Assembly (NCBI GenBank): GCA_040285825.1
Contig: JAUPSS010000012.1
Location: 1-64,000, forward strand
Direction: 5' to 3'
Source of the DNA: Eukaryota sp. TZLM1-RC
Lineage: Eukaryota; Protista; Metamonada: BaSk clade
Length of the DNA stretch: 64,000 bases
Shown one piece after another: positions 4,006 to 45,049 of this stretch; position 1 is the first letter of the stretch, and each line of letters starts with the position of its first letter. The notes under the pieces are model-generated. The model made no database searches, had not been told where the DNA came from, and saw only the letters and a program-made list of their open reading frames with translations. A program made the translations under genes and the position numbers.

Positions 4006-4901
4006 AGATTTGAATTTGATGAATTTTGTCACAAATTCCGACTTAGACCTCATCTATTCTACTTTAAATCCACAATTTGTAGGATATGAGTCTATTTGGG
4101 ATAAAGACATAATAATTTCTCAATCAAAATTAACAAAGGAATTTTATAAAAATGAAATGAATTCTCTTCAAAAAACAATGTCTGATATGGAAAAATTACA
4201 ATTAGAAGCTAATTGTTCTGAACTTTCAGGTAGTTTTTTGAATGCATTACCTTTTAATGCAAATTTCACTTTTTCTGATGAATTCATGTCTTATTTTCTG
4301 AATCTTCGATTAATTTTTAATAATTTTTATCATCAGTGTCCCAGATGTGGTTACACAAATCTCGGTTTAGACCATAGTTTTCAATGTAAAGGTGTTTCAC
4401 GATGCATTAAAAACAGACATGATGAAGTTAGAGATTATTTATTAAATATCTCCAAATATGAAAAGGAAAAGGAATTTGAAATTGGTTTAAAAAAATTTTA
4501 TTTAGATTTATTTGATCCCAAAACCAAAATTGCGTTTGATATTACAATAGTTGGTGGTTTTGGAAATAAATGGCAAGATGCTTACTCTCAAGCATTTGCT
4601 ACTAAAATAAGGAAATACAGTATTCTAAAAGAATACAATTTAATTTCAGAAATTGTTCCTTTAGTTTTTAATGTCCATGGGGGTTGGTACAAGAAAACTA
4701 AAGAAACATTTAAACGTTTTGGTTGGATTGAGCTTTGCAGTGAAATTAGTTGTATAATTCAGAAAAATAGTTTTAGATGTAATCAAGCATTTAATTCTAT
4801 TCTTCAAAGAATTCATGAAGCTCGTAGGTTTTGGTAGTTTATGTTTTTTTTATTTACTTTCATAGTTTTTTCGTTCTTTTTCTTTTAGAAATTCAATAAA
4901 G
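4006..4901 (+). mobile_element. 5'-truncated RLE-type (CRE-like) non-LTR retrotransposon, family B, inserted in the satellite
   Basis: ORF 4010-4837 has a CCHC knuckle (CPRC...HSFQC), RHDEVRD, LDL..FDITIV and KIRKY motifs of a restriction-like endonuclease. An 11-bp TSD ATCTAATCATA lies at 3995-4005 and 4902-4912. The element ends ...AAATTCAATAAAG. Confidence 0.9.
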
Positions 4902-7900
4902 ATCTAATCATACCAATGACCATTCAACCAATCATACCAATGACTAATGACCATAGCAAGGACTTTAACACCACAATTGTTATATTAATTGTCCCAAAAT
5001 GGACTTTAAAGATTTGACCAATGATTGTAATAAACAACCATTGGTCAATATACGAAACTAGGAACTTCATATGAGCCTCAGTAAATCGTATCAAAAACGA
5101 TACTCTTACACTTACAGCAATTGTTTTTATTAGTTTACAACATTCAATTGTATACTTTTGATTTTTACTTTTTTACAATTTAATGTTTAAAAATTAATAC
5201 ACTCAATTAATTCAAATATATACAAAATCATTTGAAAATGTAATCATGAGTTTGTACTGATCAAGTAACACATAGCCAACATTACTAACACACAATTTCA
5301 CACAAAGTTTGATCACAAGTTGATCACATCTAGTACATAAAGACTACATGCAACTCATCTAATCATACCAATGACCATTCAACCAATCATACCAATGACT
5401 AATGACCATAGCAAGGACTTTAACACCACAATTGTTATATTAATTGTCCCAAAATGGACTTTAAAGATTTGACCAATGATTGTAATAAACAACCATTGGT
5501 CAATATACGAAACTAGGAACTTCATATGAGCCTCAGTAAATCGTATCAAAAACGATACTCTTACACTTACAGCAATTGTTTTATTAGTTTACAACATTCA
5601 ATTGTATACTTTTTGATTTTTTACTTTTTTTACAATTTAATGTTTAAAAATTAATACACTCAATTAATTCAAATATATACAAAATCATTTGAAAATGTAA
5701 TCATGAGTTTGTACTGATCAAGTAACACATAGCCAACATTACTAACACACAATTTCACACAAAGTTTGATCACAAGTTGATCACATCTAGTACATAAAGA
5801 CTACATGCAACTCATCTAATCATACCAATGACCATTCAACCAATCATACCAATGACTAATGACCATAGCAAGGACTTTAACACCACAATTGTTATATTAA
5901 TTGTCCCAAAATGGACTTTAAAGATTTGACCAATGATTGTAATAAACAACCATTGGTCAATATACGAAACTAGGAACTTCATATGAGCCTCAGTAAATCG
6001 TATCAAAAACGATACTCTTACACTTACAGCAATGGTTATATTAGTTTGCAACATTCAATTGTATACTTTTTGATTTTTTACTTTTTTTACAATTTAATGT
6101 TTAAAAATTAATACACTCAATTAATTCAAATATATACAAAATCATTTGAAAATGTAATCATGAGTTTGTACTGATCAAGTAACACATAGCCAACATTACT
6201 AACACACAATTTCACACAAAGTTTGATCACAAGTTGATCACATCTAGTACATAAGGACTACATGCAACTCATCTAATCATACCAATGACCATTCAACCAA
6301 TCATACCAATGACTAATGACCATAGCAAGGACTTTAACACCACAATTGTTATATTAATTGTCCCAAAATGGACTTTAAAGATTTGACCAATGATTGTAAT
6401 AAACAACCATTGGTCAATATACGAAACTAGGAACTTCATATGAGCCTCAGTAAATCGTATCAAAAACGATACTCTTACACTTACAGCAATTGTTTTATTA
6501 GTTTACAACATTCAATTGTATACTTTTGATTTTTACTTTTTTACAATTTAATGTTTAAAAATTAATACACTCAATTAATTCAAATATATACAAAAATCAT
6601 TTGAAAATGTAATCATGAGTTTGTACTGATCAAGTAACACATAGCCAACATTACTAACACACAATTTCACACAAAGTTTGATCACAAGTTGATCACATCT
6701 AGTACATAAAGACTACATGCAACTCATCTAATCATACCAATGACCATTCAACCAATCATACCAATGACTAATGACCATAGCAAGGACTTTAACACCACAA
6801 TTGTTATATTAATTGTCCCAAAATGGACTTTAAAGATTTGACCAATGATTGTAATAAACAACCATTGGTCAATATACGAAACTAGGAACTTCATATGAGC
6901 CTCAGTAAATCGTATCAAAAACGATACTCTTACACTTACAGCAATTGTTTTATTAGTTTACAACATTCAATTGTATACTTTTTGATTTTTTTACTTTTTT
7001 TACAATTTAATGTTTAAAAATTAATACACTCAATTAATTCAAATATATACAAAATCATTTGAAAATGTAATCATGAGTTTGTACTGATCAAGTAACACAT
7101 AGCCAACATTACTAACACACAATTTCACACAAAGTTTGATCACAAGTTGATCACATCTAGTACATAAAGACTACATGCAACTCATCTAATCATACCAATG
7201 ACCATTCAACCAATCATACCAATGACTAATGACCATAGCAAGGACTTTAACACCACAATTGTTATATTAATTGTCCCAAAATGGACTTTAAGATTTGACC
7301 AATGATTGTAATAAACAACCATTGGTCAATATACGAAACTAGGAACTTCATATGAGCCTCAGTAAATTGTATCAAAAACGATACTCTTACACTTACAGCA
7401 ATGGTTATATTAGTTTGCAACATTCAATTGTATACTTTTTGATTTTTTACTTTTTTTACAATTTAATGTTTAAAAATTAATACACTCAATTAATTCAAAT
7501 ATATACAAAATCATTTGAAAATGTAATCATGAGTTTGTACTGATCAAGTAACACATAGCCAACATTACTAACACACAATTTCACACAAAGTTTGATCACA
7601 AGTTGATCACATCTAGTACATAAGGACTACATGCAACTCATCTAATCATACCAATGACCATTCAACCAATCATACCAATGACTAATGACCATAGCAAGGA
7701 CTTTAACACCACAATTGTTATATTAATTGTCCCAAAATGGACTTTTAAAGATTTGACCAATGATTGTAATAAACAACCATTGGTCAATATACGAAACTAG
7801 GAACTTCATATGAGCCTCAGTAAATCGTATCAAAAACGATACTCTTACACTTACAGCAATGGTTATATTAGTTTGCAACATTCAATTGTATACTTTTTGA

Positions 7901-8867
7901 TTTTTTACTTTTTTTACAATTTAATGTTTAAAAATTAATACACTCAATTAATTCAAATATATACAAAATCATTTGAAAATGTAATCATGAGTTTGTACTG
8001 ATCAAGTAACACATAGCCAACATTACTAACACACAATTTCACACAAAGTTTGATCACAAGTTGATCACATCTAGTACATAAAGACTACATGCAACTCACC
8101 AAATCATACCAATGACCATTCAACCAATCATACCAATGACTACTCAAATGACCATAGCAAGGACTTTAACACCACAATTGTTATATTAATTGTCCCAAAA
8201 TGGACTTTAAAGATTTGACCAATGATTGTAATAAACAACCATTGGTCAATATACGAAACTAGGAACTTCATATGAGCCTCAGTAAATCGTATCAAAAACG
8301 ATACTCTTACACTTACAGCAATGGTTTTTATTAGTTTGCAACGTTCAATTGTATACTTTTTGATTTTTTACTATTTTTACAATTTAATGTTTAAAAATTA
8401 ATACACTCAATTAATTCAAATATATACAAAATCATTTGAAAATGTAATCATGAGTTTGTACTGATCAAGTAACACATAGCCAACATTACTCACACACAAT
8501 TTCACACAAAGTTTGATCACAAGTTGATCACATCTAGTACATAAGGACTACATGCAACTCACCTAATCATACCAATGACCATTCAACCAATCATACCAAT
8601 GACTACTCAAATGACCATAGCACGGACTTTAACACCACAATTGTTATAATAATTGTCCCAAAATGGACTTTAAAGATTTGACCAATGATTGTAATAAACA
8701 ACCATTGGTCAATATACGAAACTAGGAACTTCATATGAGCCTCAGTAAATCGTATCAAAAACGATACTCTTACACTTACAGCAATGGTTTTATTAGTTTG
8801 CAACGTTCAATTGTATACTTTTTGATTTTTTACTATTTTTACAATTTAATGTTTAAAAATTAATAAA

Positions 8868-9694
8868 AATCTTTTTATCAGACATTCAGAACTGTACTAG
8901 TTTAATATCTCAGCAACCAAGGCCATTTGGTCTTCACTTAACAAATGACGCTTGGAAACAAAACATGCGGTTGAGATTAGGGATGTATCCAAGTGGTCTT
9001 TTGGACAATTCTTATTGTATTTGCAACAAAAAACCTACTGCCAATTTTCGTCATATTGTGAGCTGTAAGAAATTTCTCCAATATAGGTCAGTTCTTCATA
9101 ATGCCGTTCGTGATGTGACATATGAGATGTTCAAGTGTTACAATTTTAGTTGCAAAGTAGAACCCTTGTTGAAGCATTATAGTGATGATAATCTTTTTAA
9201 TTCACGTCGAGGTGATTTAATTGCTCCTTTTGTGGATTCCTCTCAAGTTGTTGTTGATTTCACTACAGTTGATCCCTTTGCTTTTGTTTATCGCGATGAT
9301 GTTTTACTTAGTGCTAATGGTCATTTGAACAAGGCTGAAGATCGTAAGAGAGATAAATATACTGAGATATTAAATGATTTAAATAAGAACCTTTATTCGA
9401 AGTTTTCGTTTGTTCCTTTTGCCTTTTCGATTTTTGGCAACATTGGACAATCCGCCTTGAATTTCATCAATGATTTTGGTAATTTATTTCGTTCAAGTGG
9501 TAAGAATTTTGCAGAGAATTTATGGAAAAATCGTATCATTTTCGCTTTGTACAGAAGTGTTCCCAAGTACTTGAGTTTAATGATGTCTAAACTTTATAAG
9601 GATTCATCAAGAGTTGGCGTGGAGAATTTGATTTCTTATGTGTTTTAGTTTGTTTTGTTTTTATTTGATTCTTTATATAAATAAATAAATAAAT
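8868..9694 (+). mobile_element. 5'-truncated CRE-like non-LTR retrotransposon, family C, inserted in the last satellite unit
   Basis: ORF 8965-9648 has CIC..HIVSC, LHNAVRD, RGDLI, VVDFT and KRDKY. A (TAAA)n tail lies at ~9678-9694. TSD AAAATTAATAAA at 8856-8867 and 9695-9706; the satellite resumes in register afterwards. Confidence 0.88.
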
Positions 9695-10209
9695 AAAATT
9701 AATAAACTCAATTAATTCAAATATATACAAAATCAATTGAAAATGTAATCATGAGTTTGTACTGATCAAGTAACACATAGCCAACATTACTAACACACAA
9801 TTTGATACAAAATTTGATCACAAGTTGATCGTGTATTTATGGGAATTTGTCAATAAAAATCATTAAAATTATTTCAAAATCGAACATACAATTCTATTTT
9901 GACAATTTTCAGGAGTGAGTATTCTTTCAATTCCTACCTTCACATCTGGAGTACACAGAAATCTTCAAGGAATGACAAGGCAGCCTTAACTAAAGAAAAC
10001 AAAAGAAAGTGCCATTATATCGAACCATTATGAAGAGGGTGTGCTTCTACACAAAGAAAGAACAGAGAAACAGATGGTTTTACAAGAAATTTAGATTAAA
10101 TGCAATAGAATACTTTTTATTATTGTCCACTTGTCCATTTTATTAATAAAAATAATTAAAAATAGAAATACAGTAATGGTTCATTAATCAAGATGAGTTC
10201 ATTGGGAAC

Positions 10210-13201: not shown

Positions 13202-15370
13202 AATAGTGTTTTGGTCTCGTTTGTTTAATGTTTGAGAATATTTTTTTAGTTTTTAGTCTTTATAAAATTTATCAATTAGTAGAGTTATTGTTTGGTTCAC
13301 ATTTTTACGACACCTTATTTGTTGGAATAAGAACAAAATTGCCAATTTGAATAGGTGAAGTATATTTGATCACTATTTCAATAGTGAAGCACGAAGACCT
13401 GTTCATTCTATCTGTAGTTTTATTAATGTCAAAAACTAGTCATAGTTGGCACAATCTATTCCTGGTTTGTTTTTCCTTTCACAATTAGATTGATCATACT
13501 CATTTCTTTAACCTTGAATTTTGATGAAAAATGATTAGTGGTAAACTGACAAAGTGTCATTATTGATAATTTAGCATCTTTATTATCAATGGTAGCTTCG
13601 ACAACACAATACACACCAGTTCCTCTATATTTAAATCTCAGGGCAATCAATAATGTGATTCAAATTTTGTGGTGATCATCCATGTCAGTGTTTGGAAGTG
13701 TTTGTTCTCATCAAAACTGATTACAAAAATACAGAGTTTGCGGCTATTGAAGGTGATGTGTACAGAATTTAAATTTATGTTTTTGAACATGAAAGTCACA
13801 CTTTTTCCTTGCTTTGGTTCTGTTCGTAAAACAAATTCTCGAAATCCACATACAAACAGTAACATCAATCCGAATTTGAAAATTCTATAATTTCTAAGTT
13901 TTTCCCACATTTAATGAGAAAAATGGATGATTTTGTAACACATATAAAGCGGTGTATAGCGCTAATGAGTGTTTTTTCTGAACTCCCAATATTGCAGAAA
14001 TTTCAAATTGTGCACTACCTGTTCTACGGTTTTGTTTGAAAACACTGCAGAACCATTTTTGTAAATTGTAAAAAACTGACATTAAAGAGGAATGGTTGCC
14101 ATGGTCAAAACAGGAAATTTCTTTTTTGAAAATCCGTTGAAGGGCCCTTGTAATTTTTCTACTACTGGGTTAGATGAAAAATTTCTTCTATTTCTGCACT
14201 TTTCAAACAAACAATAAACAGCTTTTGAACAAGTAATTCTTTGCTTTCTGCAAATGATATTGTGAATTTCTGAATCGGTATCTTATTTTGGTCGATTTTC
14301 CGAATCGCATAATCAACTGTTTCGATTTTGGAGATTCAAGGTTACAGGAGGAAGATTTTTAGTTGACTATTGCACGTCTTTTTTCGTTGTTGAATAATAT
14401 GAATATTCATTTCCGAACACTGTGTGCAAAGGTAACATACCTTTGATTTACATTATTCAAAAAATGCGAAAACTTCATGTATTGAATGCAATTGCTGAGA
14501 AACACATTGTCATCAAACAAGTTTGGTTCTGATGATAGAAGTGATATTAACTGTGATGGGGTGAAAACTCTAAAGTTATTGTTTAATTTGCGTTTTGTAC
14601 TGTTGCAAATGACACTTAGGCTCAAAAGAAACTTAATCGTGAAAAAGTTCTGCTTTTAAAGCGAATGAAAAACATGGAAAATATGACGAAGTAATTGAAG
14701 AAATTAATACAGACATTCAGGTTTACTAAAATTGCTTAAAATTTGAGCTTAAGGTAAAATAAAGAACTTTGCCTTATTTTAACCATAAAGTAATTTTAAG
14801 AACGTTAAAGTTAGACTGCATATCATTTTATTTCTTCCATTTTTGCCCAAAACATTCATTCACCATTCACTCTCATGACGTCTCTTTCTTCGTCTGAATA
14901 GAAGTCTGTTTGGGAAATTGTTGAAATGTTGAGCAAGACCTGTGTCCGAAAACGTTGCAAACTTTGTAAGCACACGTTTCCAGACAACCGATGGGCCATA
15001 GAAGGACACTGAATTCCAAATCTCAGACCCAAACTACATGTGCAACTTTGTACGTGCTTATCTGTCTTTTAAAATAAAGACTTTGACGATTTAGCTTCTT
15101 GTGTGGCAACCCATCCAAAATCGCGGAAGCTTCGATCAACGACTCCACAATCATTACCCATTTTGCATCGCTATTTTTTGCCTGCCTTTTTCTCCGCTTC
15201 ACGACCTACTACTCTACATTTATGTTCTTTGATTTTAGATAACAATTTTGTTCTTCTTTCAGAAACTGACGCATTATCTCCAGTTGCTCACAACAATGAC
15301 AAGTAAACCGAATTTTTAACAATTTTCTTTATTGACTGCAAGTGAAAATTACTACCGAAGCCGACTAGAC

Positions 15371-16257
15371 AAACTGACGGCCATTTGTGGGCTTAATGAA
15401 GGCTCGCCACTTAATAAAATTTCCTTAACAACAGTTTTACAAGAGCTGATCAACAATGCCACTGAACAGAACAAACTGTATGATGCAGTGTACCAGCTTT
15501 TATCTTACACAAAGTTGTCGCACTCGGTAGCTCCAGCTGTCGTAAGGCAAATTAACAACGGCATTCAAAAAATTCAGAATGATGTCGTCAAAAACTGACG
15601 GCCATTTGTGGGCTTAATGAAGGCTTGCCACTTATTAAAATTTCCTTAACAACAGTTTTACAAGAGCTGATCAACAATGCCACTGAACAGAACAAACTGT
15701 ATGATGCAGTGTACCAGCTTTTATCTTACACAAAGTTGTCGCACTCGGTAGCTCCAGCTGTCGTAAGGCAAATTAACAACGGCATTCAAAAAATTCAAAA
15801 TGATGTCGTCAAAAACTGACGGCCATTTGTGGGCTTAATGAAGGCTTGCCACTTATTAAAATTTCCTTAACAACAGTTTTACAAGAGCTGATCAACAATG
15901 CCACTGAACAGAACAAACTGTATGATGCAGTGTACCAGCTTTTATCTTACACAAAGTTGTCGCACTCGGTAGCTCCAGCTGTCGTAAGGCAAATTAACAA
16001 CGGCATTCAAAAAATTCAGAATGATGTCGTCAAAAACTGACGGCCATTTGTGGGCTTAATGAAGGCTTGCCACTTATTAAAATTTCCTTAACAACAGTTT
16101 TACAAGAGCTGATCAACAATGCCACTGAACAGAACAAACTGTATGATGCAGTGTACCAGCTTTTATTTTACACAAAGTTGTCGCACTCGGTAGCTCCAGC
16201 TGTCGTAAGGCAAATTAACAACGGCATTTAAAAAATTCAGAATGATGTCGTCAAAAA
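15371..16257. repeat. Four near-identical 221-bp tandem copies
   Basis: Units begin AAACTGACGGCC at 15371, 15592, 15813 and 16034 and differ at only a few sites. Confidence 0.95.
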
Positions 16258-16378
16258 TAGTAGAACTTTGTGTTGTCACAAATGAGTGTTCACAATTTGC
16301 AAATCTTTGAGAAAACTCAAATATTGCATTTCTGCCTCCACCGATGAAATCACACGAAGTAAGAATTGAGGCCTTTGT
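16253..16378 (-). mobile_element. Short diverged internal fragment of CRE-like family A
   Basis: Aligns by eye to the reverse complement of ~24947-25073 (e.g. GCAAATCTTT, ATTGCATTTCTGC, CACACGAAGTAAGAAT). Confidence 0.7.
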
Positions 16379-18571
16379 AAAAGTTGTTTTGATGTTTAAT
16401 AGATTTGAAATTAACCAAAACTCAATAATTAATTTTTGTTTGGTTTCTGCAAATGTATCGTATTTAATGTATTAAAGTGAAAAATTATCCAATAGTGTTG
16501 CGGACGGACTCTAGGATCTGAACATTGGTGGTTTCACCAGACCAGAGCACAGTCTTTTGGAACATCGCGAATAGAGAATTAGCTCGCAGGAGTCAGCAGC
16601 TACTTATGCGTTCAAGATTTCCAGAGGCAAAAAGGACAAGCACGGCCTCACCAAATGAACGGCGGTCTTCAAAAAAAACCAGAAAAAGGGATTTGGACCA
16701 GGCGAGAGCTGGAAAATAGGATCTTGAAAACGTTATAGGGTTCTTCAGAATGAATATGAAACTTGTCTGGCATTTCACGCATGATAAAGACTCGCTCGTT
16801 ATTTTGAGGACAATAAAATATTAAACTGGGTCAACAGGCAGAAATACAGACGGATTGGCCAATTCCCATGTACAAAGTGGTTGATGTATCTATATCCATA
16901 GGGTTCAGTGAAGAGAGGGACAAAAGAATTGCAGGGTAAGCTTTTGAACGGTTTGAAAACAGAGTTGAAAAATTCAGTGGATGTGACGGCAGTCTTGATC
17001 ACAGGAGCAAGTTGTTTGCAGGATATACAAAATTAAACATGATTGGACAGATTGCTTGTTATTTGAGGCGAGCGAAAATCAGACTTGTGAAATGTTTTTC
17101 AACAGGAAGCAAAAGAAGAATGTACAGTTTCGATAGATTTATGGGCGAGTATGAAGGATCTCAGATTTAAACAATTTCAGACCGAGTTGAGGTTCGATGA
17201 AGCAAGCTTAATAGAGGGTGTCGTTATTGAAAAGCTTTTGCTACTCCTTGAATATCTTGTCAAGAACAACTGTAAATAGTTTGAATAAATAGTTCCATTT
17301 ATTAAAACAAACGGAAGGCATTACATGGTTCCAAAGCGGAGCAAAAAGAGAAGAATAAGTTTACATCAGGGGGATCAGTATCTTCGATGAGGTAGTCTTC
17401 GGGTAAAGCTTCTTAAACGAACTCAAAAATCGAGTTGACAGAGTTAGCTTCGGAATCGTCGATGGAGTGGATAACTCGGCTAACATTTTGTTGGGTGTAG
17501 TATCTCCTGAGGAAAAATGGCTGTGAACGGTCTTATAAACAGCCAATTTTTGTCTGGTTTCACAACCAGATTCGGAACAGTTTTTAATCATAAAGCCGGA
17601 CTTCTTACAATAGAAGCGTGTGAGAGGGGATTATGAAGGATCATGAAGGACGTAATGGTTTGGTCAACTGTCGCGGCGAAGAGGTTGAAACTAAGGGACT
17701 GGTATCGATGGTAAACGCTAACAGAGTGTTTGTACTGGAAAAATGGTGAAAGAATGGGTAAAAACAGCTTTGACGCTTCTGGGCTCTACCCCAGTGAACA
17801 TTTCGAAGGTTTAAGGGACTGCGAAAACAATTGTGAAAAGACGTACAATAACATGGTTTGATAGAGCTGATCTTCAGCGGGGCTCTGGTGGAGCTTGAAA
17901 GATTCTATACTAAAACGAGAGGATGGTTCATAAACAGAGGAAGTCATGAAAGAATGGAAGTGGAACAGTTTTCCTGTTGAACTCATGGGTGTCATTGTCA
18001 GAAGTGACTTCAGGAATATTTTCCTCAGAACAAACGATAATCTGTACCCAGGTCTTTAATCTCATTAGACAGAACAACAGTGGTCTCATTGTGAATCAGG
18101 GGTGCAAGACGGCTCTAAGTCGTCGTTGGGAAAGAAGAACCGAGAGTTAGAAAACGGAAAACATCTTGTCATGTCTGACATAAAATGAGCAGACACACGA
18201 GACGCATAAATATTTAAAGCATCTACAAAGCGGGAAACGGCTACTTGACCTGTATTATTCAAAATTGGAGCTACCAAGTTTGCGGGGTTCAGGACAGGGG
18301 ACAGTACCAATTCCTTACGGGTGCCAGTTATTGCTGTTTTTTCTTGTACACTACGCATAAACATAAAAACAAGAGTTTAAGAACAGAGATGCATCGATTA
18401 TTTCAAGCATGCATCGATTATTTCACCACAAAAGAAAAACAATTGAAAGGAAATTTGCAGTCAAACATAATTTGATCAAAACTAAGTAGATTCACTTAGT
18501 TTTTGTTTAATCCAGCGTTATTGAACATGAATTATGATTTTTATATCTCCTTCAATCTTCTACATTAATAT

Positions 18572-18632
18572 ATTTATTGAATTTGCACACTTAATTAAAT
18601 TAACTCAATACTAATGGGACGACTATCGTTAA
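18572..18632 (-). mobile_element. Stand-alone copy of the family A 3'UTR (stop codon to terminus)
   Basis: The reverse complement TTAACGATAGTCGTCCCATTAG...GTGTGCAAATTCAATAAAT matches 26076-26136. Confidence 0.9.
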
Positions 18633-19016
18633 CAGTAAAAAAGAACCAAAGGAATCTTCACCTGCGTCATTGGCCATCATGGATGGATCAAGGAAAATGG
18701 TTGATAATTGTTTTAATGTAAAGCTTAAAAACCAAAAAAAAACTAAAATCCATGTTTATTAAATACTGTGGTACTGAAATTGTTAATTGCAATCCATGAA
18801 ATAAGACACCAGGTATTGGTTCATAGTGGAAGGCATAAAAGAATAAATGAGAAGAACAGTTCGTTTAAACTGAATTCTTCAGGGCAATCATTATTCAGAT
18901 TTACTCCAGTTGCTGAACACTTGATAGCAACAAGGACTAACAATTGTCGAGGTCTTGAATGAATAAAACACAATAAAAAACAAATTTAAACACAGCTAAA
19001 CAACATCCTCAACAAC

Positions 19017-20948
19017 CTAAGGGATTCCATCCCGGATTTTATTGAAAAGGGGTTCATGATACGGAAGAACATCATCAACAAAAATGCTAATATCATCGTC
19101 ATCAAATTCAATTGTTGAGAGTGAAGGAGCAAAAACAATCCTCAAAATGAAAAAAGCTAAATTTCGCAACTGATGGAACTGTTGATCATTTTCCAATTTA
19201 GAGTATTCTTTTACTTGAGTCAAAACCTCATTAAAAATGTCCATCCAGTATGTGCCACAATTGCCGCAGAAATTGGCCGTGGAGGAGAGGAAAATGTAAG
19301 CATTTGTATTGCTCATGTTCACAACAGTGGAACATGCAGTTTTTCTAAACAATGCCAGACTCGTTGCACTCAACTCCAAAACAAAATTCAAGAGGCGCCA
19401 GCGGAAAAACGTGGAGTGATCGGAAACTGTGTGATCGTGTTTAGGTAAAGGAAAAAAAGTGGCTACAACAAAAAGGATAAAATCAATTTTACGTAAAACC
19501 GATTGAGCCCCCAACAGAACAGTTCTGGTATAGAGGAAGTATAGAGCAGCAACGTAGCCAATCAAACAAGGTTGAATAACAGTCACCTTATCAATCAGCT
19601 TGACAAACAAAGGATGTAACTGGCCTGTCTGGCACTGATCTTCGTGGCCAATGTAAGCACAATGTTGAAAAACAGAGAATAGTTCTACAGGAGATTGAAA
19701 GTGGCTTGCATTGAAATGACAAGGCAAAAAGAGCGACAAGTCCTCACCTCTGTCGGCAACAGGCAAGCTGAACACCAAGTTGTTCAATTCTGCATCTGCG
19801 GGAAGAACTTCTCTTTTGAAAACCAAATATAGGGCATCTACGGATTCCTCAATTCCTCCTCGGATATCAGCTCGAGTGAACCCATGCAATTCTGGTGAGG
19901 TGTAAACTCTTGGATAGGTTCGTGAAAGTACTTTGTACAAATGATCCTGAATAGCATAGTGTGCGAAAGCAACACGCCAATCAGGATAGCCTGTGCCAAC
20001 ACCATGACTTGAGATACAGTGGTCTAAAAAAGTGGCATTAAGTCTCCCATACCGTTGGTAATTACGATCGCAACTTTCAGCTAGATCTTGGTGGCTGTTG
20101 TAGTGTTGGTCCCAAATAAGTTCAAGGGAGTTAAAGTTACGAATAATATGGGACATCCGATCTGCGGATTTTGCCACATCCATTATATTCCATTGCAGTG
20201 TCTCGAAATACGGACGCGTCCTTTTCGTTCCAGCCATGGCAGCTAACTTGCCAAGGTCTGACTGAGACCATTGTCTGGGCAATATTTGATTAAAGCTCCG
20301 TCTCAGTGATTCGTGGGTGTAAACGCGGATTCTGACTGGTTCGTTTGATACAAGTCTATTACAAACTGTTTCCCAGAATGATAGGGAGCTGGGGCTCAAC
20401 AACTTCATGCCTTCTTGAAGCAAACATTCAGTGTAACAGAGAACGTAGTTATAGCGCTCCGACTGGAGGCCGTTACTGAGGACATGATCACAACGATCTA
20501 AAGTGCAGCGGATCATGTGTCCGTTTTTGATGGCTGAGGCTAAAATGATCTCCACGACAACACTCCAATGGGTTTTTCCTTTTTTTGTTTGAAGGCGAGC
20601 AATTTCTTCTGCAGTGACCTCTTCTTGGGTGAGTAACTCAGTTTGAGCTGGTCTAGCCTTAAATTTGCGGAGCATTCGCACAATCTCGAAAGTAATATTA
20701 CGCTTCTTAAACTCAGAAAACAGAATGTCACAACGTTCCATGAGATGTCGGGGCGAATGGCCGTGGCGTATATCCGGAACAAACGATTGAATGATAGTGT
20801 TAAGAAGGTATTTGAAACCAACACCAATGCATAGAGGGTGGGGACTACGTTGATTGATTGTAAAAATGTAATATCTTACACGTGGTCGTTGTCCATAAGC
20901 GGATTTAGTCGTACTACGTACGTACGAATGTAAACCAGAAATGCCCAT
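19017..20948 (-). CDS. 643-aa protein with XPG/FEN1/Asteroid-type (PIN-like) N-terminus, probably catalytically degenerate
   Basis: Starts MGISGLHSYV (compare MGIQGLTKVI of FEN1 in this window); an H3TH-like LAAMAGT is present. Intact and intronless. Confidence 0.55.
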   Translation of the reverse strand: MGISGLHSYVRSTTKSAYGQRPRVRYYIFTINQRSPHPLCIGVGFKYLLNTIIQSFVPDIRHGHSPRHLMERCDILFSEFKKRNITFEIVRMLRKFKARPAQTELLTQEEVTAEEIARLQTKKGKTHWSVVVEIILASAIKNGHMIRCTLDRCDHVLSNGLQSERYNYVLCYTECLLQEGMKLLSPSSLSFWETVCNRLVSNEPVRIRVYTHESLRRSFNQILPRQWSQSDLGKLAAMAGTKRTRPYFETLQWNIMDVAKSADRMSHIIRNFNSLELIWDQHYNSHQDLAESCDRNYQRYGRLNATFLDHCISSHGVGTGYPDWRVAFAHYAIQDHLYKVLSRTYPRVYTSPELHGFTRADIRGGIEESVDALYLVFKREVLPADAELNNLVFSLPVADRGEDLSLFLPCHFNASHFQSPVELFSVFQHCAYIGHEDQCQTGQLHPLFVKLIDKVTVIQPCLIGYVAALYFLYTRTVLLGAQSVLRKIDFILFVVATFFPLPKHDHTVSDHSTFFRWRLLNFVLELSATSLALFRKTACSTVVNMSNTNAYIFLSSTANFCGNCGTYWMDIFNEVLTQVKEYSKLENDQQFHQLRNLAFFILRIVFAPSLSTIEFDDDDISIFVDDVLPYHEPLFNKIRDGIP

Positions 20949-21009
20949 TTTCGGAACAACAGATTGTGGGAAAATATTACTGTGGTTGAATTTTAGGTAA
21001 AAAAATCGT

Positions 21010-22073
21010 ATTTACTGAATTTGCACACTTGATTAAATTAAATCATAACCAATGGGGCGACTATCATTGAACCAAGATTTCCTCTACAAAATCTTGATCT
21101 GCTTGCTGTCTAGCTAAAGCTTCTCTTATTCGATTGAAAAACCGCGGTAATCTATTAATAATGGCAAATTGAATCCGTGAACGCCATAAAAAATGTCAAA
21201 TCTTTTCATTGTTTTTTCTTGAACCATTTTTTGGAAGTCATTCAAAAATATTTCTGCTTCATCTGATAATCTTCCATTTATCGAAAATGGGAAAGCAATA
21301 AAAATTAGCTGTGTATTTCTATCAGCATTAGCTTCTTCGATGTCTTTTTCATATTTTCTATGTTTTTTTCTTTGCTTTAAAATCAAGAGCATTTACAGAA
21401 TTAAGTTTTCTTCTGTGAACCAAAGTATCATTTGCAACATTACATGAAACAAAGTCAACAACAGCTTCAGAGTTATCAATCCAATCACAGTATACATCAC
21501 CTCTATCATCAGAACCAAAATTATTCAATGACAGTGTTTCCTTCAGCAGAGGCTCTTTGATACACGATATCCTTGCAGTTTGTGCCATATTGAAAACAGT
21601 GTCTCTAACAGCATCATGTAATGAAGAACGATAAGTTATCAATTTAGAGCAATTCAGAGCATGGCGCAAAGTGAGTTGAGGTGAATTCGAACAAATACAT
21701 TTTTCTTTTGATAATAGCTGGTTAATGGGGATGTTCAAATATAATCTCATTTTTGTTACAAATGCTTCATTAGTGGCACACAATCCAAATCTTCGAGGTA
21801 CAATGGTTACAAAAAGTGAAGAATCTGACGACTTGTTTTTACAAACACCCTTTTCCAATAACAATGAGTGAAGATCTTGATTTAAAACAGCCGAGCTGCA
21901 TATATTATTATAAAGATCTTTTTCATACATTCCAGTCAATCGTTTCTGTAATGTTCGAAGAGTGTACTTCAAATTTAAAACATTTTTTTCTGGAATATTG
22001 CCATTGAATGATTGGGGAAAACATCGACCCCATTTTTCTACATCAATTCTTGAAATTTCTTCATTTAATGCAA
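21010..22073 (-). mobile_element. 5'-truncated copy of CRE-like family A (RLE domain + 3'UTR)
   Basis: ORFs 21358-22077 and 21126-21392 are nearly identical to 25174-26079. The terminal AATAAA reads AGTAAA in this copy. Confidence 0.93.
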
Positions 22074-22519
22074 TCAATCTTCTACATTACTAAACATTCT
22101 TCAGCAAGAAGAAACTCTGTCTTTGTCAGAAGAATTTAGTCAAAAAAAGACAAGATCCTGAAAAACAGTCAAAAAAACATTGATCTGGCGTTTTTTTCAG
22201 AAAATTCAAATGAAATTGAAGGATTTTTCATCCGGGCACAGGAATGAGTAGGATGAACTCATAAGTAGTTTTAGTGCAACCAAAATACTTTGTAGTTTAG
22301 TGTTAGTACGTTAACTTTTGCCCAACCCTGGCTAAAAGAATGGACTTAAAAATGAATAATTTTGATAATAAATGAACTTTTTAGTAATGAACACTTGGAA
22401 AACTATAATTATGGGGCCTTATTGGCAATAATTGTGAAACACAAAGTATGTTATGGCTATAATGGATGGGTATTGAATTCCAAAATGCCACAACTTCAAC
22501 ACCTGGGTGATTGCATACA

Positions 22520-22790
22520 AGATGAATGGTTCATTTGTTCCCACGGCTTTACGTTTTTTAGCAGATTTTGAAATGATTGTAAGAAGAAGAACTAACAGAA
22601 ATTTCAACAGACTGTTTTTGCAAAATAGAATTGTGTTTTCTATTCTTAAGGGTTTGTTGAAGATGCCTTCTGATGCTTTGATTTCTCTTGGATCTCACTA
22701 TGAGAGAGTTGCATCTAGTGGTTTTGTTTTGGGAGAGAAGTATTATTTAGATGATTTATAAGTTGTTTAATAAATAAATTGTATTTAAAA
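22520..22790 (+). mobile_element. 3' fragment of another CRE-like family
   Basis: GSFVPTALRFLADF...NRIVFSILK resembles the C-termini of ORFs 8965-9648 and 45294-45791; followed by TAATAAATAAA. Confidence 0.65.
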
Positions 22791-22798: not shown

Positions 22799-25700
22799 TT
22801 TTTTTTCTTCCTCTACATATAACCGTTTAACTTAAAACCTGGCTGAACCGAGATCATTGCTTCTATTCTTTCTTGTTGATGTCTGAATCAGTTTCTGATT
22901 CTAATGGAGTCAAAAGAAAGAACGATAGTCAACAAGATGCTCAAGACGTCCTTTCCACCTCTCCTCCTCAACCTCTTCTCTCTTCATTTTTGGACAAAAA
23001 AAAATTCTGATCAAGAATTTTTAGACAATCACGATGAAAAAAAAGTTTGTTCAAAAACAAAGCCACGCTCCTACAGATGCTCAAAGTGTCGACAACAGGG
23101 ACATAATGCTCGAACATGCCCCAATGTTGGAAAAAAATGATGCGGCAAATTCTGAAACAAAATGTAAAAGAAAATTTATTAGAAGGAAAGAGTCTAAGGT
23201 AGAACCCATAAATAATGCTCCACAAGTTGTTGCAAAACCAGTTAGCAATCGATTGAAGCACAAAACTTGCAACACTTGTGGTATTTCTTTTAGAAAAAAT
23301 GCAAAAGGAAAAACTTCTGATCGCTGCTTGAAATGCCGCATAGTTGATAACTACCATCCTCCTATAAGAATACCTCAAGAAATTCATCCGACCAAATGCA
23401 ATGAATTTGCTTTCGTTTTTCAAAGATTTTTGGATCAATTATGTAAAGGAAAGTATGCTATCAATATTATTTGGGAATTTTTTGGTTCTTTTTGTCCTCC
23501 TTTTGAACAAAATTTCGTTAATATTTCCGAAGATTTAACTAATATAGCACCGAGAAATCAGTCATCCGAGAAATTAAGTAAAATTTTTGAAGACAAATGC
23601 TTTGACAACAAATGGTCCAAGGCTTTGTCAGCTTTAAGTCCCGGAGTCAAAGCACCGAACAATGAAAATACAGTAGATAAACTGAAAATACTTCATCCTT
23701 ATGAAGACCCTATTATGGATCAAAATTTTTACGGCACATACTGGGAAAATTATCCATTGATGCCATCAGAAGTTTTTTTCGGTTATCAAAAAGAGACCTC
23801 GTGGTAAGTCTGCCGGACTTTCTGTTATTACTATTGATCATGTAAAAGCCGCGATTATTTCTTCAGAAGATTGCCTTGGTTTATTGACCAAATTTTTCAA
23901 CCAAATATTATCTGGTCAACGCAAGTACCCAGAAGAATTAAGAAGTTCTCGTTTGACTGCACTTGTCAAAAATTCAAAAATGGATGTTCGTCCTATTGCA
24001 GTCTCTGAGAGCTTACATAATATTTTTTTCTGCGTGTTGCTTAAGCAGGTTCAATGAAAAAGCTAAAAGATTTTATTACCCTTTCAATATGGTATAAATA
24101 CTACAGATGGAGTCTCTTCAGCGATTTTTGCTACTGATGTCTTATTTCGTCAAAATGAATCCAATGTTTGCATGTCATTGGATTTTTAGTAATGCTTTCA
24201 ATTCGCTAAGTCGTCGCAGTATCCATGGTGCTCTATTGCAATATATGCCAGAATTAATACCATATTTTCAATCAACATATTGCACATATTCTAATTTACA
24301 TTTTGGTAACAACATTTTGATTTCATCAAGTGGCGTAAAGCAAGGAGATCCGTTAGGACCTCTTTTGTTTTGTTTGGCCATTCATCCTATTCTACTGCAA
24401 ATTCAAGAGATGTTTCCTTCACTAAAAATGATTGCATATATGGATGATGTTGTGCTTATTGGTGAATTAAATATTGTGAAAAAGCAACTGTATGTTTTAA
24501 AGAATTATTTACCAAAATTGGTCTCCGACTTAATTTACTAAAATGTGTTTTGTTATCGAATTCTCCAGTTTCCACAATAATTGATGATATTGAAATTCAA
24601 GCCAAATTATATTCAATTGATGCTATTCGTCATTTGGGTTCGTTTTTAGGAAATAATGATGAAATTACCAAAAAATTGTTTGAAAAGTTGAACTCAATTT
24701 CTGACAAAATTGACCGAATGATGAATTTAGATATAAAAAAACACATCAAATTTACCATTATAAGACTGTGTTTTAGTTCCAATTTTAATCATATATTTCG
24801 ATCTACAAATCCTCTCGTCACTAGACCTTTGGCTCAAAAGTTTAATGAGTTACGTGCAAAAAGTTCTGTCTCAATTACTGGGATGTAAAATGTTTCAAAT
24901 TCCAGATCATGCTTACCTTAGTCCACAATATGGTGGTTTAGGGTGGACGAAGGCTTCTATTCTTACCTCGTGTGCTTTTTGTTGGTGGATGCAGAAATGC
25001 AATCTTTGAGGTCTCCGAAAGATTTGCAGATTGGGAAGATTTATTGATGACAACGCAAAAGTTCCACTGTTTTTGCATTAAATGAAGAAATTTCAAGAAT
25101 TGATGTAGAAAAATGGGGTCGATGTTTTCCCCAATCATTCAATGGCAATATTCCAGAAAAAAATGTTTTAAATTTGAAGTACACTCTTCGAACATTACAG
25201 AAAAGATTGACTGGAATGTATGAAAAAGATCTTTATAATAATATTTGCAGCTCGGCTGTTTTAAATCAAGATCTTCACTCATTGTTATTGGAAAAGGGTG
25301 TTTGTGAAAACAAGGTGTCAGATTCTTCACTTTTTGTAACCATTGTACCACGAAGATTTGGATTGTGTGCTACTAATGAAGCATTTGTAACAAAAATGAG
25401 ATTATATTTGAACATCCCCATTAGCCAATTATTATCAAAAGAAAAATGTATTTGTTCGAATTCACCTCAACTCACTTTGCGCCATGCTCTAAATTGCTCT
25501 AAATTGATAACTTATCGTTCTTCATTACATGATGCTGTTAGAGACACTGTTTTCTATATGGCACAAACTGCAAGGATATCGTGTATCAAAGAGCCCCTGC
25601 TGAAAGAAACACTTTCCCTGAATAATTTTGGTTCTGATGATAGAGGTGATGTATACTGTGATTGGATTGATAATTCTGAAGCTATTGTTGACTTTGTCTC

Positions 25701-26137
25701 ATGTAATGTTGCAAACGATACTTTGGTTCACAGAAGAAAACTTAATCCTGTGGCTGCTCTGGATTTTAAAGCAAAAGAAAAACATAGAAAATATGATAAA
25801 GAAATTGAAGATGCAAATATCGATAGAAATACACAGCTGGTTTTTATTGCTTTCCCATTTTCGATAAATGGAAGATTATCAGTTGAAGCAGAAACTTTTT
25901 TGGATGACTTCCAAAAAATGGTGAAAGAAAAAACAATGAAAAGATTTGATATTTTTTTATGGCGTTCACGGATTCAATTTGCCATTATTAATAGATTACC
26001 GCGGTTTTTCAATCGAATTAGAGTTGCTTTAGCTAGACAGCAAGCAAATCAAGATTTTGTAGAGGAAATCTTGGTTTAATGATAGTCGTCCCATTAGTTA
26101 TGATTTAATTTAATCAAGTGTGCAAATTCAATAAATT
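22799..26137 (+). mobile_element. Near full-length CRE-like non-LTR retrotransposon, family A (single ORF ~22879-26079: Zn knuckle - RT - RLE)
   Basis: CCHC knuckle CSKCRQQGHNARTC; RT motifs (L)DFSNAFN, GVKQGDPLGPLLF and YMDD; RLE motifs CIC..HALNC, LHDAVRD, RGDV, VDF and KHRKY. TSD AAAAACTGAAT at 22788-22798 and 26138-26148. Confidence 0.93.
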
Positions 26138-30012: not shown

Positions 30013-32244
30013 ATGCATGACTTTCTTGCCAATCTCGAAAGTCATCAGCAGTACACTGCCTACTTCGACTACCTCAACACTCTCAATGAACCTCTGACAT
30101 CAGCTTTATATGATTCACTGTATAACTTTCTCAAATCACCAGATGGCGATCTCCTTTCCTCCAAGGAATGTGTTTCCAGTCTAGCGCACCTCTTTTCAAA
30201 TACCATCGTTATTACTGATGATGTAGTACATCCACTCACTCTTTTGCTTTTTCACAACTACCTTTCGTCCACTTCCTTCTCATCTCTTTCACAACCTTTG
30301 TCCTCTCTACTTCGAAGACACCCTGCACCTCCGCCCTTGATCATTTCATCGTGTACCTCAGCTCTTTCTTCTGTTCATACCCCATCAAAAAACATTGATT
30401 TTCTTCGTCTTGTTCCCTCCCTTTTAGCCAACTCTGCTACCCCTGAACGCTCCCGTCTCCTCACATTCACTCTCAACTGCACCACCTCTCCATCCTCCCA
30501 CGTACGTCTCCTGGTCTCTCAATCCCTTCCTTACCTAGCTTCCTTAGTGGTGGCGGACCCTTCAAAGCTTAAATCCCAAAGAGCGAAGCATCTCAATATT
30601 GAACTGGCCAATAAAATACTTGGTAGTGCTTCAGCTCTACTTTCAGATTCCACTTCTATCGTAAAGATTTCCACCTATAAGGCTTCTATTCTTGTTTTGG
30701 ATTCTCTTCCAATTACCCCTCTGAGTGGTTCATTAGCATCTAAGTTAACTGACCTTGTCGGTGTTTGGTCAAGGGAATTCAAAGGAAAATTTGATTGGTT
30801 GGTGATGGGAGGATTGACTGTGGTTATAGGAAATAAGTTTAGTGAATATTTTACCAAATTTTCGAATGGATTGATGCAACAACTGAAAGTATCAGAGTCG
30901 TCCCAAGTCAAGGATATGGTCTTTAAAAGTTTGAAATTTTTGTCGATTTCGTCATTGAAGAGCTCAACTAATGTGGTAAAATTTTTAACTTTTTGTGACG
31001 AAATTTTTATATCGTTTCGTGAATTATTGTACAATTTTAATAATAATTTTGAAATCAATGTGGATTCTAAGGTTGAATTTACTGTCGATTGTTCCGTCAT
31101 TTATTCAGTATTATTGCCTTTTTTTAAGATTTATTTTTCGGACAACAATTCCAAAATTTTGGTACTGTCAAATTTATTCGAACTTTTCTTGTTGATCTCT
31201 ACTGCCACATGTTTACAGTCTCCTCATTATCTTCCCAAAATTTTGTCCAAATTCTTACACATGATCTCTTCTAGTTTGACTGATGAGGATCAATCAGTTG
31301 TCAAGTTGTCAGTTGATCTCTTTTCCTTAATCTTATTAATTCTTTCTCGACCAGTCATTTCCAAAATATCATTCAATCGGAAACTGATTTCGGTATTTTT
31401 AACCGGGTCAAGTACATCACGTGCCTTGATTGGTCTTGCCCAACCTTTATTGGACGCACATTTCAAGCTTTCATATTCCTCTTGGCGCCAAAGATTGGTA
31501 TACTGTAGGTTCATTCAAACATTGATCTCTTTTATGGGTTCACGAGAAAATTTAGACTTTTTTTCAGGTCTAAGTTCATTATTGAATTCGAATTTTCAAA
31601 TTAAGGACCAAAGGGGTAATCAATTGCAACTTCCTTTTATATTGACTGAGCAAATTATGGAGAAAATTGCTCAAAAGTATCACGTGATCAAAGGTCAAAA
31701 AGCGATAAATTTAATTGATGAATTAATTCTTTCTTTTTCGTCACGTAATTCAACAGAGCAAGTCGTTTTTGTTACGTGTTGTGGAATCATTTCAGAAAAA
31801 TGTTCATTTAGTCTCTTCAAAACTAAATTTTTGGCTAAATTTTTGGAAGTTGTCAACGATCCCCAATTGATCTCTTCTGTATCGAATAGAGCTCAAATAG
31901 GACAAGCAATCTACAATGTCAAAATTTCCTTAGTCACTGGATCAAGACTAACTAATTCCAAATCTTTGTTTTCTTTTGTAGTTGATTTGGAATCTGTTTT
32001 TGACTCAATTCAGAATAGCTTGAACACACATCTCATTGAAAACTTTACCTCTCTCGGTATTTCAGAGTCACTTGTCTTGTGGGATCAAGAAGAAGAATCA
32101 AGAAGGATATCACGGGAGCAATCAAATCTGATTGCAATCAAGGGGGATGATTTGATTGGAAATGATTCGAGGTTACCAGTCAAAGGTTTATCACCTCAAA
32201 AAACTGCCCAAATCGATAAAAAAATACAATCCTTTGTTGTTTAA
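30013..32244 (+). CDS. HEAT/ARM-repeat protein (743 aa), possibly a phosphatase regulatory subunit
   Basis: Leu-rich helical repeats with HEAT-like segments SSHVRLLVSQSL, LLSDSTSIVK and SSWRQRLVY. Confidence 0.6.
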   Translation: MHDFLANLESHQQYTAYFDYLNTLNEPLTSALYDSLYNFLKSPDGDLLSSKECVSSLAHLFSNTIVITDDVVHPLTLLLFHNYLSSTSFSSLSQPLSSLLRRHPAPPPLIISSCTSALSSVHTPSKNIDFLRLVPSLLANSATPERSRLLTFTLNCTTSPSSHVRLLVSQSLPYLASLVVADPSKLKSQRAKHLNIELANKILGSASALLSDSTSIVKISTYKASILVLDSLPITPLSGSLASKLTDLVGVWSREFKGKFDWLVMGGLTVVIGNKFSEYFTKFSNGLMQQLKVSESSQVKDMVFKSLKFLSISSLKSSTNVVKFLTFCDEIFISFRELLYNFNNNFEINVDSKVEFTVDCSVIYSVLLPFFKIYFSDNNSKILVLSNLFELFLLISTATCLQSPHYLPKILSKFLHMISSSLTDEDQSVVKLSVDLFSLILLILSRPVISKISFNRKLISVFLTGSSTSRALIGLAQPLLDAHFKLSYSSWRQRLVYCRFIQTLISFMGSRENLDFFSGLSSLLNSNFQIKDQRGNQLQLPFILTEQIMEKIAQKYHVIKGQKAINLIDELILSFSSRNSTEQVVFVTCCGIISEKCSFSLFKTKFLAKFLEVVNDPQLISSVSNRAQIGQAIYNVKISLVTGSRLTNSKSLFSFVVDLESVFDSIQNSLNTHLIENFTSLGISESLVLWDQEEESRRISREQSNLIAIKGDDLIGNDSRLPVKGLSPQKTAQIDKKIQSFVV

Positions 32245-39373: not shown

Positions 39374-39590
39374 TTTATTAAACCTATACACTTGACAAAA
39401 TAAAATCATAACCAATGGGACGAAATTCATTGAACCAAGATTTCCTCTACAAAATCTTGGTCAGCTTGATGCCTAGCTAAAGCTTCTCTTATTTGATTGA
39501 AAAACCGAATTAATCTATTAATAATGGAAAATTGAATTCGATAGCGTCATAAAAAGATGTCAAATCTTTTCATTGTTTTTTCTTGAACCA
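39374..39590 (-). mobile_element. Diverged 3' fragment of family A CRE-like element
   Basis: Matches the reverse complement of ~25920-26135 (GAACCAAGATTTCCTCTACAAAATCTTG etc.); no clear TSD. Confidence 0.85.
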
Positions 39591-45023: not shown

Positions 45024-45049
45024 TAATAATGGATTAGAATTCATTTCTG

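Follow-up and report, generated by a model that had tools for sequence, protein, structure and literature searches.

How did a complete gene come to lie between two pieces of a retrotransposon, with a single target-site duplication around all three? The locus that raises this question is a composite of about 3.5 kb (18552-22089) in Eukaryota sp. TZLM1-RC, a Skoliomonas metamonad and free-living anaerobic flagellate, and it was analyzed within a 64-kb stretch of DNA (the window). Every part lies on the minus strand in the same orientation (Table 1), and the coordinates and order that an earlier note on this DNA had given for the element piece, ORF, trailer, tail, and 16-mers all held on re-examination. 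The surroundings of the composite are TE-rich and close to a contig end with satellite DNA.

Table 1. Parts of the composite and the family A copy used as reference (positions in the window)
Feature	Position	Strand	Remark
Target-site duplication, 3'-end side of composite	18552..18567	.	TCAATCTTCTACATTA, perfect 16-mer
Extra bases (3 or 4) between tail end (…AATAAAT[A]) and duplication	18568..18571	-	
Bare family A tail stub, 61 nt (stop-codon region + 3'UTR)	18572..18632	-	L003/L004-type subfamily
Trailer, 384 nt, 3' of cargo stop codon	18633..19016	-	
Intact cargo ORF, 643 aa, ATG to stop	19017..20948	-	
Leader, 61 nt, from exact 3' end of element piece to cargo ATG	20949..21009	-	First 3 nt (CGA) may be extra
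5'-truncated degenerate family A copy with complete 3' end (element piece)	21010..22073	-	= family A positions 2275-3338
Target-site duplication, truncated-5'-end side	22074..22089	.	Perfect 16-mer
Full-length family A reference copy, 3338 bp	22799..26136	+	11-bp duplication; outside composite

Both outer ends of the composite touch the one 16/16-bp duplication, and the homology of the element piece ends precisely where the 16-mer begins. The 16-mer occurs twice in the 64-kb window, at these two places, and a third copy was absent even with 2 mismatches permitted, which bears out the claim of a perfect 16-bp direct repeat bracketing the block. The duplication is exactly 16 bp, because the flanking bases outside the two copies differ, and the chance of an exact 16-mer at two set positions is roughly 1e-9. 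When a private target-site duplication was sought for each of the two element parts, the best shared words were just 6-7 nt and lay away from the junctions, in line with the view that neither has a local one. The family A copies at 22799 and 34431 have their own duplications of 11 bp each (AAAAACTGAAT and ACCTTACTACA), as had also been claimed. Exact duplications at four other family A copies measure 10-11 bp, versus 16 bp at the composite, and those at L003a and L004a are possibly longer if one indel is permitted. Elsewhere, family A 3' junctions read …AATAAAT followed by 1-8 variable extra bases, without poly(A), and then the duplication. The 3' junction of the composite fits this pattern, as its tail ends …AATAAATA and just 3-4 nt separate it from the duplication, again without poly(A). 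With one duplication bounding it and a family-typical 3' junction, the 3.5-kb block appears to be one insertion unit, as first proposed, with the anatomy of a single-event chimeric or transduced non-LTR retrocopy.

The element that supplies both ends, family A, is abundant (200 protein matches, clusters of up to 138 members) and probably active, and one of its ORFs, of >1000 aa, runs into locus L005. Its reverse transcriptase domain matches RVT_1 in Pfam (E 2.9e-9), and the closest solved structures are R2 proteins (E 3e-5). The N-terminal zinc knuckles are of the CCHC type. No match to the endonuclease domain was obtained in Pfam or the PDB, even with a profile. A C-terminal CCHC motif with invariant D314, D324, and K340 is kept between TZLM1-RC and a relative from TZLM3-RCL; read by eye, this CCHC plus D…D…K arrangement is a putative RLE motif by comparison with R2. 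Judged by its reverse transcriptase, family A is an R2-like element. Its insertion sites are varied, with five readable duplications of unrelated sequence, and it is not site-specific. The label “CRE-like” used in the earlier note is not borne out, given an R2-like reverse transcriptase, insertion at unrelated sites, and an endonuclease domain without a database match; no phylogeny or family model speaks for CRE.

The two family A parts of the composite differ in age and subfamily. Aligned with positions 2275-3338 of the full-length copy, the element piece (22073-21010) is 94.9% identical. It carries 31 private substitutions (2.9% private divergence) and 2 private internal indels; its frame is broken, and the ORFs within it split at about 21360-21390. 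Counted as private substitutions plus frameshifts, this is 31 + 2 per 1064 nt versus 5-7 in young family A copies. No near-identical sibling of the piece was found among the sampled family A proteins, where the search covered part of a 94-member protein cluster and the nearest protein differed at 6 of 189 residues. The tail stub is 92-93% identical to the last 61 nt of family A (positions 3278-3338), its homology start being uncertain by about 5 nt, and from GATAGTCG onwards it is the same as the L003 and L004 tails. The duplication and tail stub show 0 changes in 87 nt. The stub had been described as a second bare copy of the element 3'UTR; a family A tail is indeed present at 18632-18572, but it is not a copy of the tail of the element piece. 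The two tails are 87% identical with subfamily-diagnostic differences, and a model in which they are duplicates of one another was therefore excluded. No conserved, stable, or covarying RNA fold was detected in the 61-nt tail, so that the proposal that the family A protein would recognize it as a tag is drawn by analogy from R2.

The middle piece (leader, ORF, and trailer) is not element sequence by similarity comparison. Its 1932-nt ORF is intact from ATG to stop and has no similarity to the element, which agrees with its description as an intact 643-aa non-retroelement ORF. Neither the window nor ~125 kb of other loci that were sampled contained repeats of the middle piece, and no terminal inverted repeats were found, so a DNA-transposon model for it was ruled out. 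In a clustering of about 15 billion proteins at 90%, the cargo protein stands alone in its cluster. A word-indexed search of 5.8 billion proteins and an exhaustive phmmer search for relatives of any length among 1.84 billion representatives each returned only the protein itself, the IMG/VR and JGI metagenome scans gave no viral or metagenomic relatives, and there was no match to Pfam or to PDB sequences. Likewise, neither the called proteins of the genome nor the roughly 190 kb of it that were sampled contained a second copy. A neighboring 743-aa ORF is equally orphan, and the orphan status of the cargo is thus uninformative on foreign origin. GC3 of the cargo is 0.40, and both GC3 and codon use lie within the host range.

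As for what the cargo encodes, language-model features scored PIN-like_DDX60 at 0.91, with 176 shared features, and the named neighbors all belong to the XPG/PIN-like group (PIN-like_DDX60, XPG, Asteroid, FAM120). The protein begins with MGISGL and has no Asp or Glu before residue 59. Such features suggest a possible divergent PIN-like/XPG-type domain, probably non-catalytic, in the N-terminal half. A BLASTP comparison with the FEN1 of the window itself gave no match, and a single-sequence AF2 model was unusable (pLDDT 37.5). Cargo residues 584-633 matched the antisense strand of family A weakly in tblastn (E 0.3-2.6), which was judged to be chance. The trailer has no similarity elsewhere in the sequences compared, and a plus-strand open frame of 43 codons in it, considered as the end of a convergent gene at a parent locus, was not significant. 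Rfam and tRNA scans of the composite gave no match, and the regions upstream of host genes showed no promoter motif in common that might serve as a yardstick for the leader.

Four low-share DNA sequencing runs were examined for reads from the locus; for gene prediction, the genome paper reports that RNA-seq was employed (PMC11316075). In these runs, the element parts are multicopy and the single-copy flanks are patchy, at a depth of about 2.5 (X2) versus hundreds for family A. Cargo coverage is zero over 2.3 kb, at most a hint that the sample may lack the cargo, since coverage holes do not prove absence, and there were no short-read contigs on the cargo or across either junction. A read joint from 18622 to 21086, considered as a deletion allele, proved to come from a normal copy of the element that aligns to either tail. 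In a long-range screen for a second composite, words shared between the flanks of 14 other family A copies yielded 2 matches, both rejected, one because it was an element segment that is repeated and the other because its 13-mer lay off the junction. The unbridged junctions and the TE-rich position near a contig end with satellite DNA are what might be expected of a misjoin at family A repeats. Such a misjoin could not put identical 16-mers precisely against the two outer element ends, the tail stub is just 61 nt, and the 16-mer is too improbable by chance, and too isolated in the window at 2 mismatches, to be a ready coincidence; we regard an assembly artifact or a coincidental 16-mer as scarcely credible.

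The best explanation of the composite, which we put forward tentatively and at somewhat short of even chances, is one event of target-primed reverse transcription by the family A machinery, acting in trans on a single read-through RNA. The endonuclease would nick the target with a 16-bp stagger, and reverse transcription would start at the end of the 61-nt family A tail. Synthesis would then continue through the trailer, the complete 643-aa gene, and the leader, enter a dead family A copy, and halt within its 3' kilobase, leaving the 5' truncation. Such a template would most likely be one RNA read from a parent locus where an old family A copy preceded the gene, 58-61 nt before the ATG, and a short tail-only insertion followed it, 384 nt after the stop codon. 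A gene with a tail stub downstream is plausible, because tail-only family A fragments of 61, 69, and 87 nt occur elsewhere. Any transcript ending in the family A tail would be a substrate for the reverse transcriptase of the element, and the event would in effect be a 5' transduction of upstream sequence by the tail stub. The cargo would be a copy of a gene sitting now or formerly elsewhere; that this was a host gene we only infer, because no source copy was found among the called proteins or in the searched collections.

Several observations count for such a co-transcript. The trailer extends about 125 nt beyond its only AATAAA and meets the tail stub without poly(A). The element piece is complete to its very last 3' base, which resembles a genomic insertion junction. 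At the divergence of the element piece, the probability that the ORF would have stayed intact is 0.002 and that the duplication and tail would be unchanged is 0.07, values which suggest that a family A copy within the template was dead beforehand. Against the single read-through RNA stands that no parent was found in the collections searched, although a young copy should have a near-identical one in the same proteome, and the degenerate element piece has no sibling among the sampled family A proteins. The composite is also a single example, with none other of the cargo type in the window plus about 125 kb; its 16-bp duplication exceeds the exact matches at other copies, and the putative role of the tail in recognition leans on R2.

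Much the same anatomy could arise if the reverse transcriptase had changed templates serially in one event, from tail RNA to an unrelated gene RNA, by a first switch near the stop codon, and then, on reaching the 5' end of that RNA, end-to-end onto the 3' terminus of a further family A RNA before it stopped. A hybrid would have a tail-tagged gene transcript and one jump, and either a host mRNA or a foreign RNA, e.g., viral, might have supplied the middle. R2-type reverse transcriptases switch templates in vitro and in vivo, reaching U12 snRNA and tRNAs (PMC3414825), and a tripartite LINE chimera with 14-bp flanking repeats, WEIRD/Mg-SINE/MGL, is on record from Magnaporthe (PMC2104539). The element piece and the tail stub belong to separate subfamilies, the leader of 58-61 nt could be an entire 5'UTR, and the element piece, at its exact 3' end, is followed by 3 extra bases (CGA) before the leader, like a jump junction. 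A foreign or rare middle RNA would also account more readily for a missing genomic parent. Yet a jump to the 3' end of an mRNA should bring poly(A), which the junction of trailer and tail lacks, and the first switch would be internal, near the stop codon, where no RNA 5' end is known. A further demand is that the element RNA that served as acceptor should physically terminate, at its 3' end, precisely at …AATAAATA. The element piece is also dead and frameshifted, not RNA of an active subfamily. No viral or metagenomic relative speaks for a foreign middle RNA, and its GC3 and codon use are host-like. The poly(A)-free junctions and the old, frameshifted element piece slightly favor the co-transcript, and we consider serial jumps a serious possibility of about one chance to two against.

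The contrast in age between the element piece, with its private divergence and 2 frameshifts, and the pristine tail stub could also mean that an old truncated family A copy with a 16-bp duplication was already in place when a gene-plus-tail insertion joined its 3' end later, free of a duplication. The bottom-strand nick site is regenerated after insertion, and re-cutting is possible in principle. It would, however, leave a third 16-mer between the parts, where there is none, and the insertion would have to be exact to one base and without duplication, whereas readable family A junctions show duplications of 10-16 bp. We find two events improbable, and they would still require a retrotransposed gene-plus-tail unit, so that the main claim remains. 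Such a unit, with leader, ORF, trailer, and family A tail, has the layout expected of a non-autonomous element that parasitizes family A through the shared tail, in the manner of a SINE or SIDE, and that was fused here to the element piece; R2, R1, and their SIDEs show stringent tail recognition (PMC3414825). Against this, the cargo exists in a single copy, alone in its cluster and with no homologue among the 1.84 billion representatives, it has zero coverage in runs where family A reaches hundreds, and about 190 kb of sampled genome holds no match to it. The cargo composite is not a multicopy mobile family, and a non-autonomous element of this kind is very unlikely. Finally, family A may natively write any RNA that ends in the 61-nt tail, and the locus may be a working gene that exists only as the delivered copy, its parent lost or its RNA foreign (e.g., viral), which would make the insertion a route of gene gain in a metamonad; this combination seems unlikely to us, if less so than two events.

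For L1-type elements, chimeric and transduced retrocopies are a familiar product, and those that arise from LINE template switching include mammalian U6-L1. Like U6-L1 and the Magnaporthe chimera, the composite fuses unrelated RNA-derived parts in one orientation, with the LINE tail 3'-most and one short direct repeat bounding all (14 bp in Magnaporthe, 16 bp here). Those chimeras were made by APE-type LINEs, and their other parts are short non-coding RNAs or pseudogenes, whereas the composite involves an R2-like element (RLE-type by motif), a LINE tail of just 61 nt, a middle part that is an intact 643-codon gene without another copy, and a second LINE piece at the 5' end. With 3' and 5' transduction of the L1 type, where transcripts that read through or begin upstream take flanking DNA along, it shares non-element and element sequence within one duplication, junctions that resemble genomic insertion junctions, and no poly(A) between the parts. 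L1 differs in using poly(A), so that any downstream polyadenylated read-through works; the composite would need a second copy of the element tail at the RNA 3' end, and no source locus for it was found.

Among R2-like elements, which select by their own 3'UTR, we know of natural chimeras only as small RNAs fused at the 5' ends. R2 reverse transcriptases are the most similar to that of family A among solved structures, and both elements leave insertion junctions without poly(A). R2 proteins select their template by their own 3'UTR, and tail recognition in family A is putative by comparison. R2 is specific to a site in 28S rDNA, while family A sites are varied, and family A has CCHC-type N-terminal knuckles, unlike R2. 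The natural R2 jumps described concern small RNAs, not genes, and the composite carries a gene. CRE, SLACS, and CZAR resemble family A in being single-ORF-type protist non-LTR elements with no poly(A) tail and, in a by-eye reading, in the CCHC and D…D…K motif at the C terminus; spliced-leader genes are the insertion sites of the CRE clade, whereas family A enters varied sites. The layout of the composite matches that of PRINT, the engineered insertion of transgene RNA with an R2 3'UTR at its 3' end (PMC11371274).

The composite looks like a natural case of a retrotransposon-tail-tagged RNA written into a genome, with the source of the gene not found. If a complete gene was delivered behind a 61-nt tail, a very short tail would suffice for trans-mobilization in vivo, and the locus would be a natural precedent for, or counterpart of, the R2 3'UTR-tagged transgene insertion of PRINT. 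Such delivery would also point to a means by which TE-rich genomes in a little-studied eukaryotic lineage move or gain genes. Were the cargo truly parentless, it would represent gene relocation or acquisition via a retrotransposon.

The 16-mer TCAATCTTCTACATTA brackets the composite, a 3.5-kb block of minus-strand parts (see table), and the repeat is exactly 16 bp long because the bases outside both copies differ. No third copy occurs in the 64-kb window, even with two mismatches allowed. The order described in the earlier note of truncated element, intact ORF, trailer and bare tail between perfect repeats holds at every coordinate. In minus-strand reading, family A (an R2-like non-LTR retrotransposon) begins directly after the right-hand 16-mer, and the element piece terminates at the exact family A 3′ end; three or four extra bases separate the tail stub from the left-hand 16-mer. 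A private target-site duplication was sought at each element piece, and neither has one, in agreement with the first reading. The reported second bare 3′UTR copy is indeed a family A tail, but it is not a duplicate of the other tail, as the two are 87% identical with different subfamily-diagnostic bases. This rules out invasion of a pre-existing element with duplication of its own tail.

Parts of the composite and other features of the window and of an additional locus (L004)
Feature	Position	Strand	Description
16-bp duplication	18552-18567 and 22074-22089		TCAATCTTCTACATTA
Element piece	22073-21010	minus	Family A positions 2275-3338 of the 3338-bp copy 22799-26136, 94.9%
Leader		minus	61 nt between element piece and cargo ATG
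Cargo ORF	20948-19017	minus	643 codons, ATG to TAG
Trailer		minus	384 nt after cargo ORF
Tail stub	18632-18572	minus	61 nt, family A stop-codon region and 3′UTR
Satellite	1-9970		Fills contig end; 457-bp unit, ~16-18 units; one ~900 bp interruption near 4100-4880; diverged unit ~9627-9970; recurring sub-repeat CAATGACCATTCAACCAATCATACC
Tandem repeat	15371-16333		221 bp, four copies, 82-99% alike; amid decayed retroelement remnants, those at 14493-14701 and 16252-16378 being A-like
Unannotated repeat	22527-22753		Between composite and full-length family A copy
Orphan ORF	30013-32244	plus	743 aa, adjoins KAP
Related 3′ fragment	39374-39590	minus	217 nt, from a separate family akin to family A (84%); tail ends …AATAAAAG, same tail variant at L004:17124-18061
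TnpB/Fanzor-like gene	46433-47635	plus	400-aa ORF, Cas12f1-like TNB zinc-ribbon (PF07282, E 1.1e-6); ~1.4 kb from family A copy 43848-45026
Family A copy, full length	L004:7729-10822		Within one duplication (ACACCAATGA); A positions 1679-2360 inverted at 9309-9988

Six additional loci from the same genome (~125 kb in total) were examined. Readable family A insertions (four copies) have 10-11-bp duplications by exact match, those of L003a and L004a being possibly longer with one indel allowed. The duplications are mutually unrelated in sequence, so family A is not site-specific and the label “CRE-like” used earlier is unsupported. At the 3′ end, family A insertions finish in …AATAAAT followed by 1-8 variable bases, without poly(A); the composite 3′ junction matches this pattern, and its 16-bp duplication exceeds those at the four other copies.

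Family A encodes a reverse transcriptase domain (RVT_1, E 2.9e-9) and an N-terminal CCHC knuckle, and R2 proteins are its closest solved relatives. The C-terminal domain combines a CCHC motif with conserved Asp/Asp/Lys positions; it matched nothing in Pfam or PDB, profile included, and is a putative restriction-like endonuclease on a motif read by eye. Family A is abundant in the TZLM1-RC proteome: one C-terminal ORF matched 200 proteins there, and the largest of their clusters has 138 members. An uninterrupted family A ORF of >1000 aa extends into the additional locus L005. The reference copy at 22799-26136 has 7 private substitutions in its last kilobase and a coding region broken into six or more ORFs that differ in frame, reflecting either several frameshifts or the use of frameshifting by family A. 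The inverted segment in the L004 copy may represent a twin-priming-like inversion at insertion. The unannotated repeat has a family A-like sequencing-run depth (~190-360), with ~10% divergence from the window copy.

The simplest account of one duplication around three colinear parts is a single reverse transcription event, primed on the family A tail, that would have produced the whole composite. Its template may have been one RNA, read through from a parent locus with an old family A copy, the gene and a tail-only stub. We lean towards this route at somewhat below even confidence; it accounts for the missing poly(A) at the trailer-tail junction, and the trailer extending ~125 nt past its only AATAAA. 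It would also explain why the element piece is dead and why, at the inner junction, that piece stops precisely at the family 3′ end. Tail-only family A fragments of 61-87 nt are present at other sites. Serial template jumps are a slightly less likely route, with which the membership of the two element parts in different subfamilies and the three bases added at the inner junction agree. R2 template jumps are documented in vivo (PMC3414825), and template jumping is also documented for a tripartite LINE chimera with 14-bp repeats at its ends (PMC2104539). Either route presupposes a source for the cargo; the called proteins contain none, which is the chief weakness of both. The ~190 kb sampled contained no second composite. 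Insertion in two steps appears improbable.

A non-autonomous mobile family is very unlikely, and an artefact is the least credible reading. The middle piece (leader, cargo ORF and trailer) has no DNA- or protein-level similarity to the rest of the window or the sampled loci, no terminal inverted repeats and no match in Rfam or tRNA scans. In sequencing runs the family A parts reach depths in the hundreds and the cargo has no contig at all; among ~15 billion proteins, the cargo forms a 90% cluster by itself. The middle piece is not multicopy.

The element piece (1064 nt) has a broken frame, 2 private internal indels and 31 private substitutions, against 5-7 such substitutions in young family A copies whose duplications are clean. 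In contrast, the duplication pair and tail stub show 0 changes in 87 nt, and the 1932-nt cargo ORF is intact. At the element-piece divergence, 87 nt would stay unchanged with probability 0.07, and simulation left the ORF intact in 0.2% of trials. Thus, either the insertion is young and its template held an already dead family A copy, or it dates further back and purifying selection acts on the cargo.

The cargo has no match in Pfam, PDB or the 5.8-billion, 1.84-billion, IMG/VR and JGI collections. Its GC3 (0.40) and codon use lie within the host range, unlike those of family A (GC3 0.24-0.29). Its neighbours by language-model features are the PIN-like_DDX60, XPG, MKT1, Asteroid, FAM120 and poxvirus G5 clusters, and the first 330 residues (0.91, 176 shared features) place more strongly there than the whole protein. 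This PIN-like/XPG-type affinity is a lead rather than proof. The N-terminus reads MGISGL, and since no acidic residue precedes position 59, the domain, if PIN-like, probably lacks the usual active site. A single-sequence AF2 model was unusable.

The window (GC ~35%; assembly GCA_040285825.1, contig JAUPSS010000012.1, positions 1 to 64,000, NCBI organism name Eukaryota sp. TZLM1-RC) carries predominantly single-ORF genes, among them Vps35, KAP, FEN1 and MatE. Skoliomonas is reportedly a free-living anaerobic metamonad of soda lakes, and the paper describing it (PMC11603281) names TZLM1-RC 22 times. No Pfam domain was found in the 743-aa ORF, and the 5.8-billion collection contains no homologue of it; being as orphan as the cargo, it indicates a poorly sampled lineage, in which long orphan genes seem common.

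The composite belongs with chimeric or transduced non-LTR retrocopies, a known class, but differs from known members in that the element is R2-like, non-site-specific and in a metamonad, the tail tag is only 61 nt, and the middle part is a whole gene, intact and otherwise unique. The family A tail showed no conserved fold. By analogy with R2, the 61-nt tail would be recognised by the family A protein, and the layout of the composite mirrors that of PRINT, the engineered insertion of R2 3′UTR-tagged transgenes (PMC11371274).
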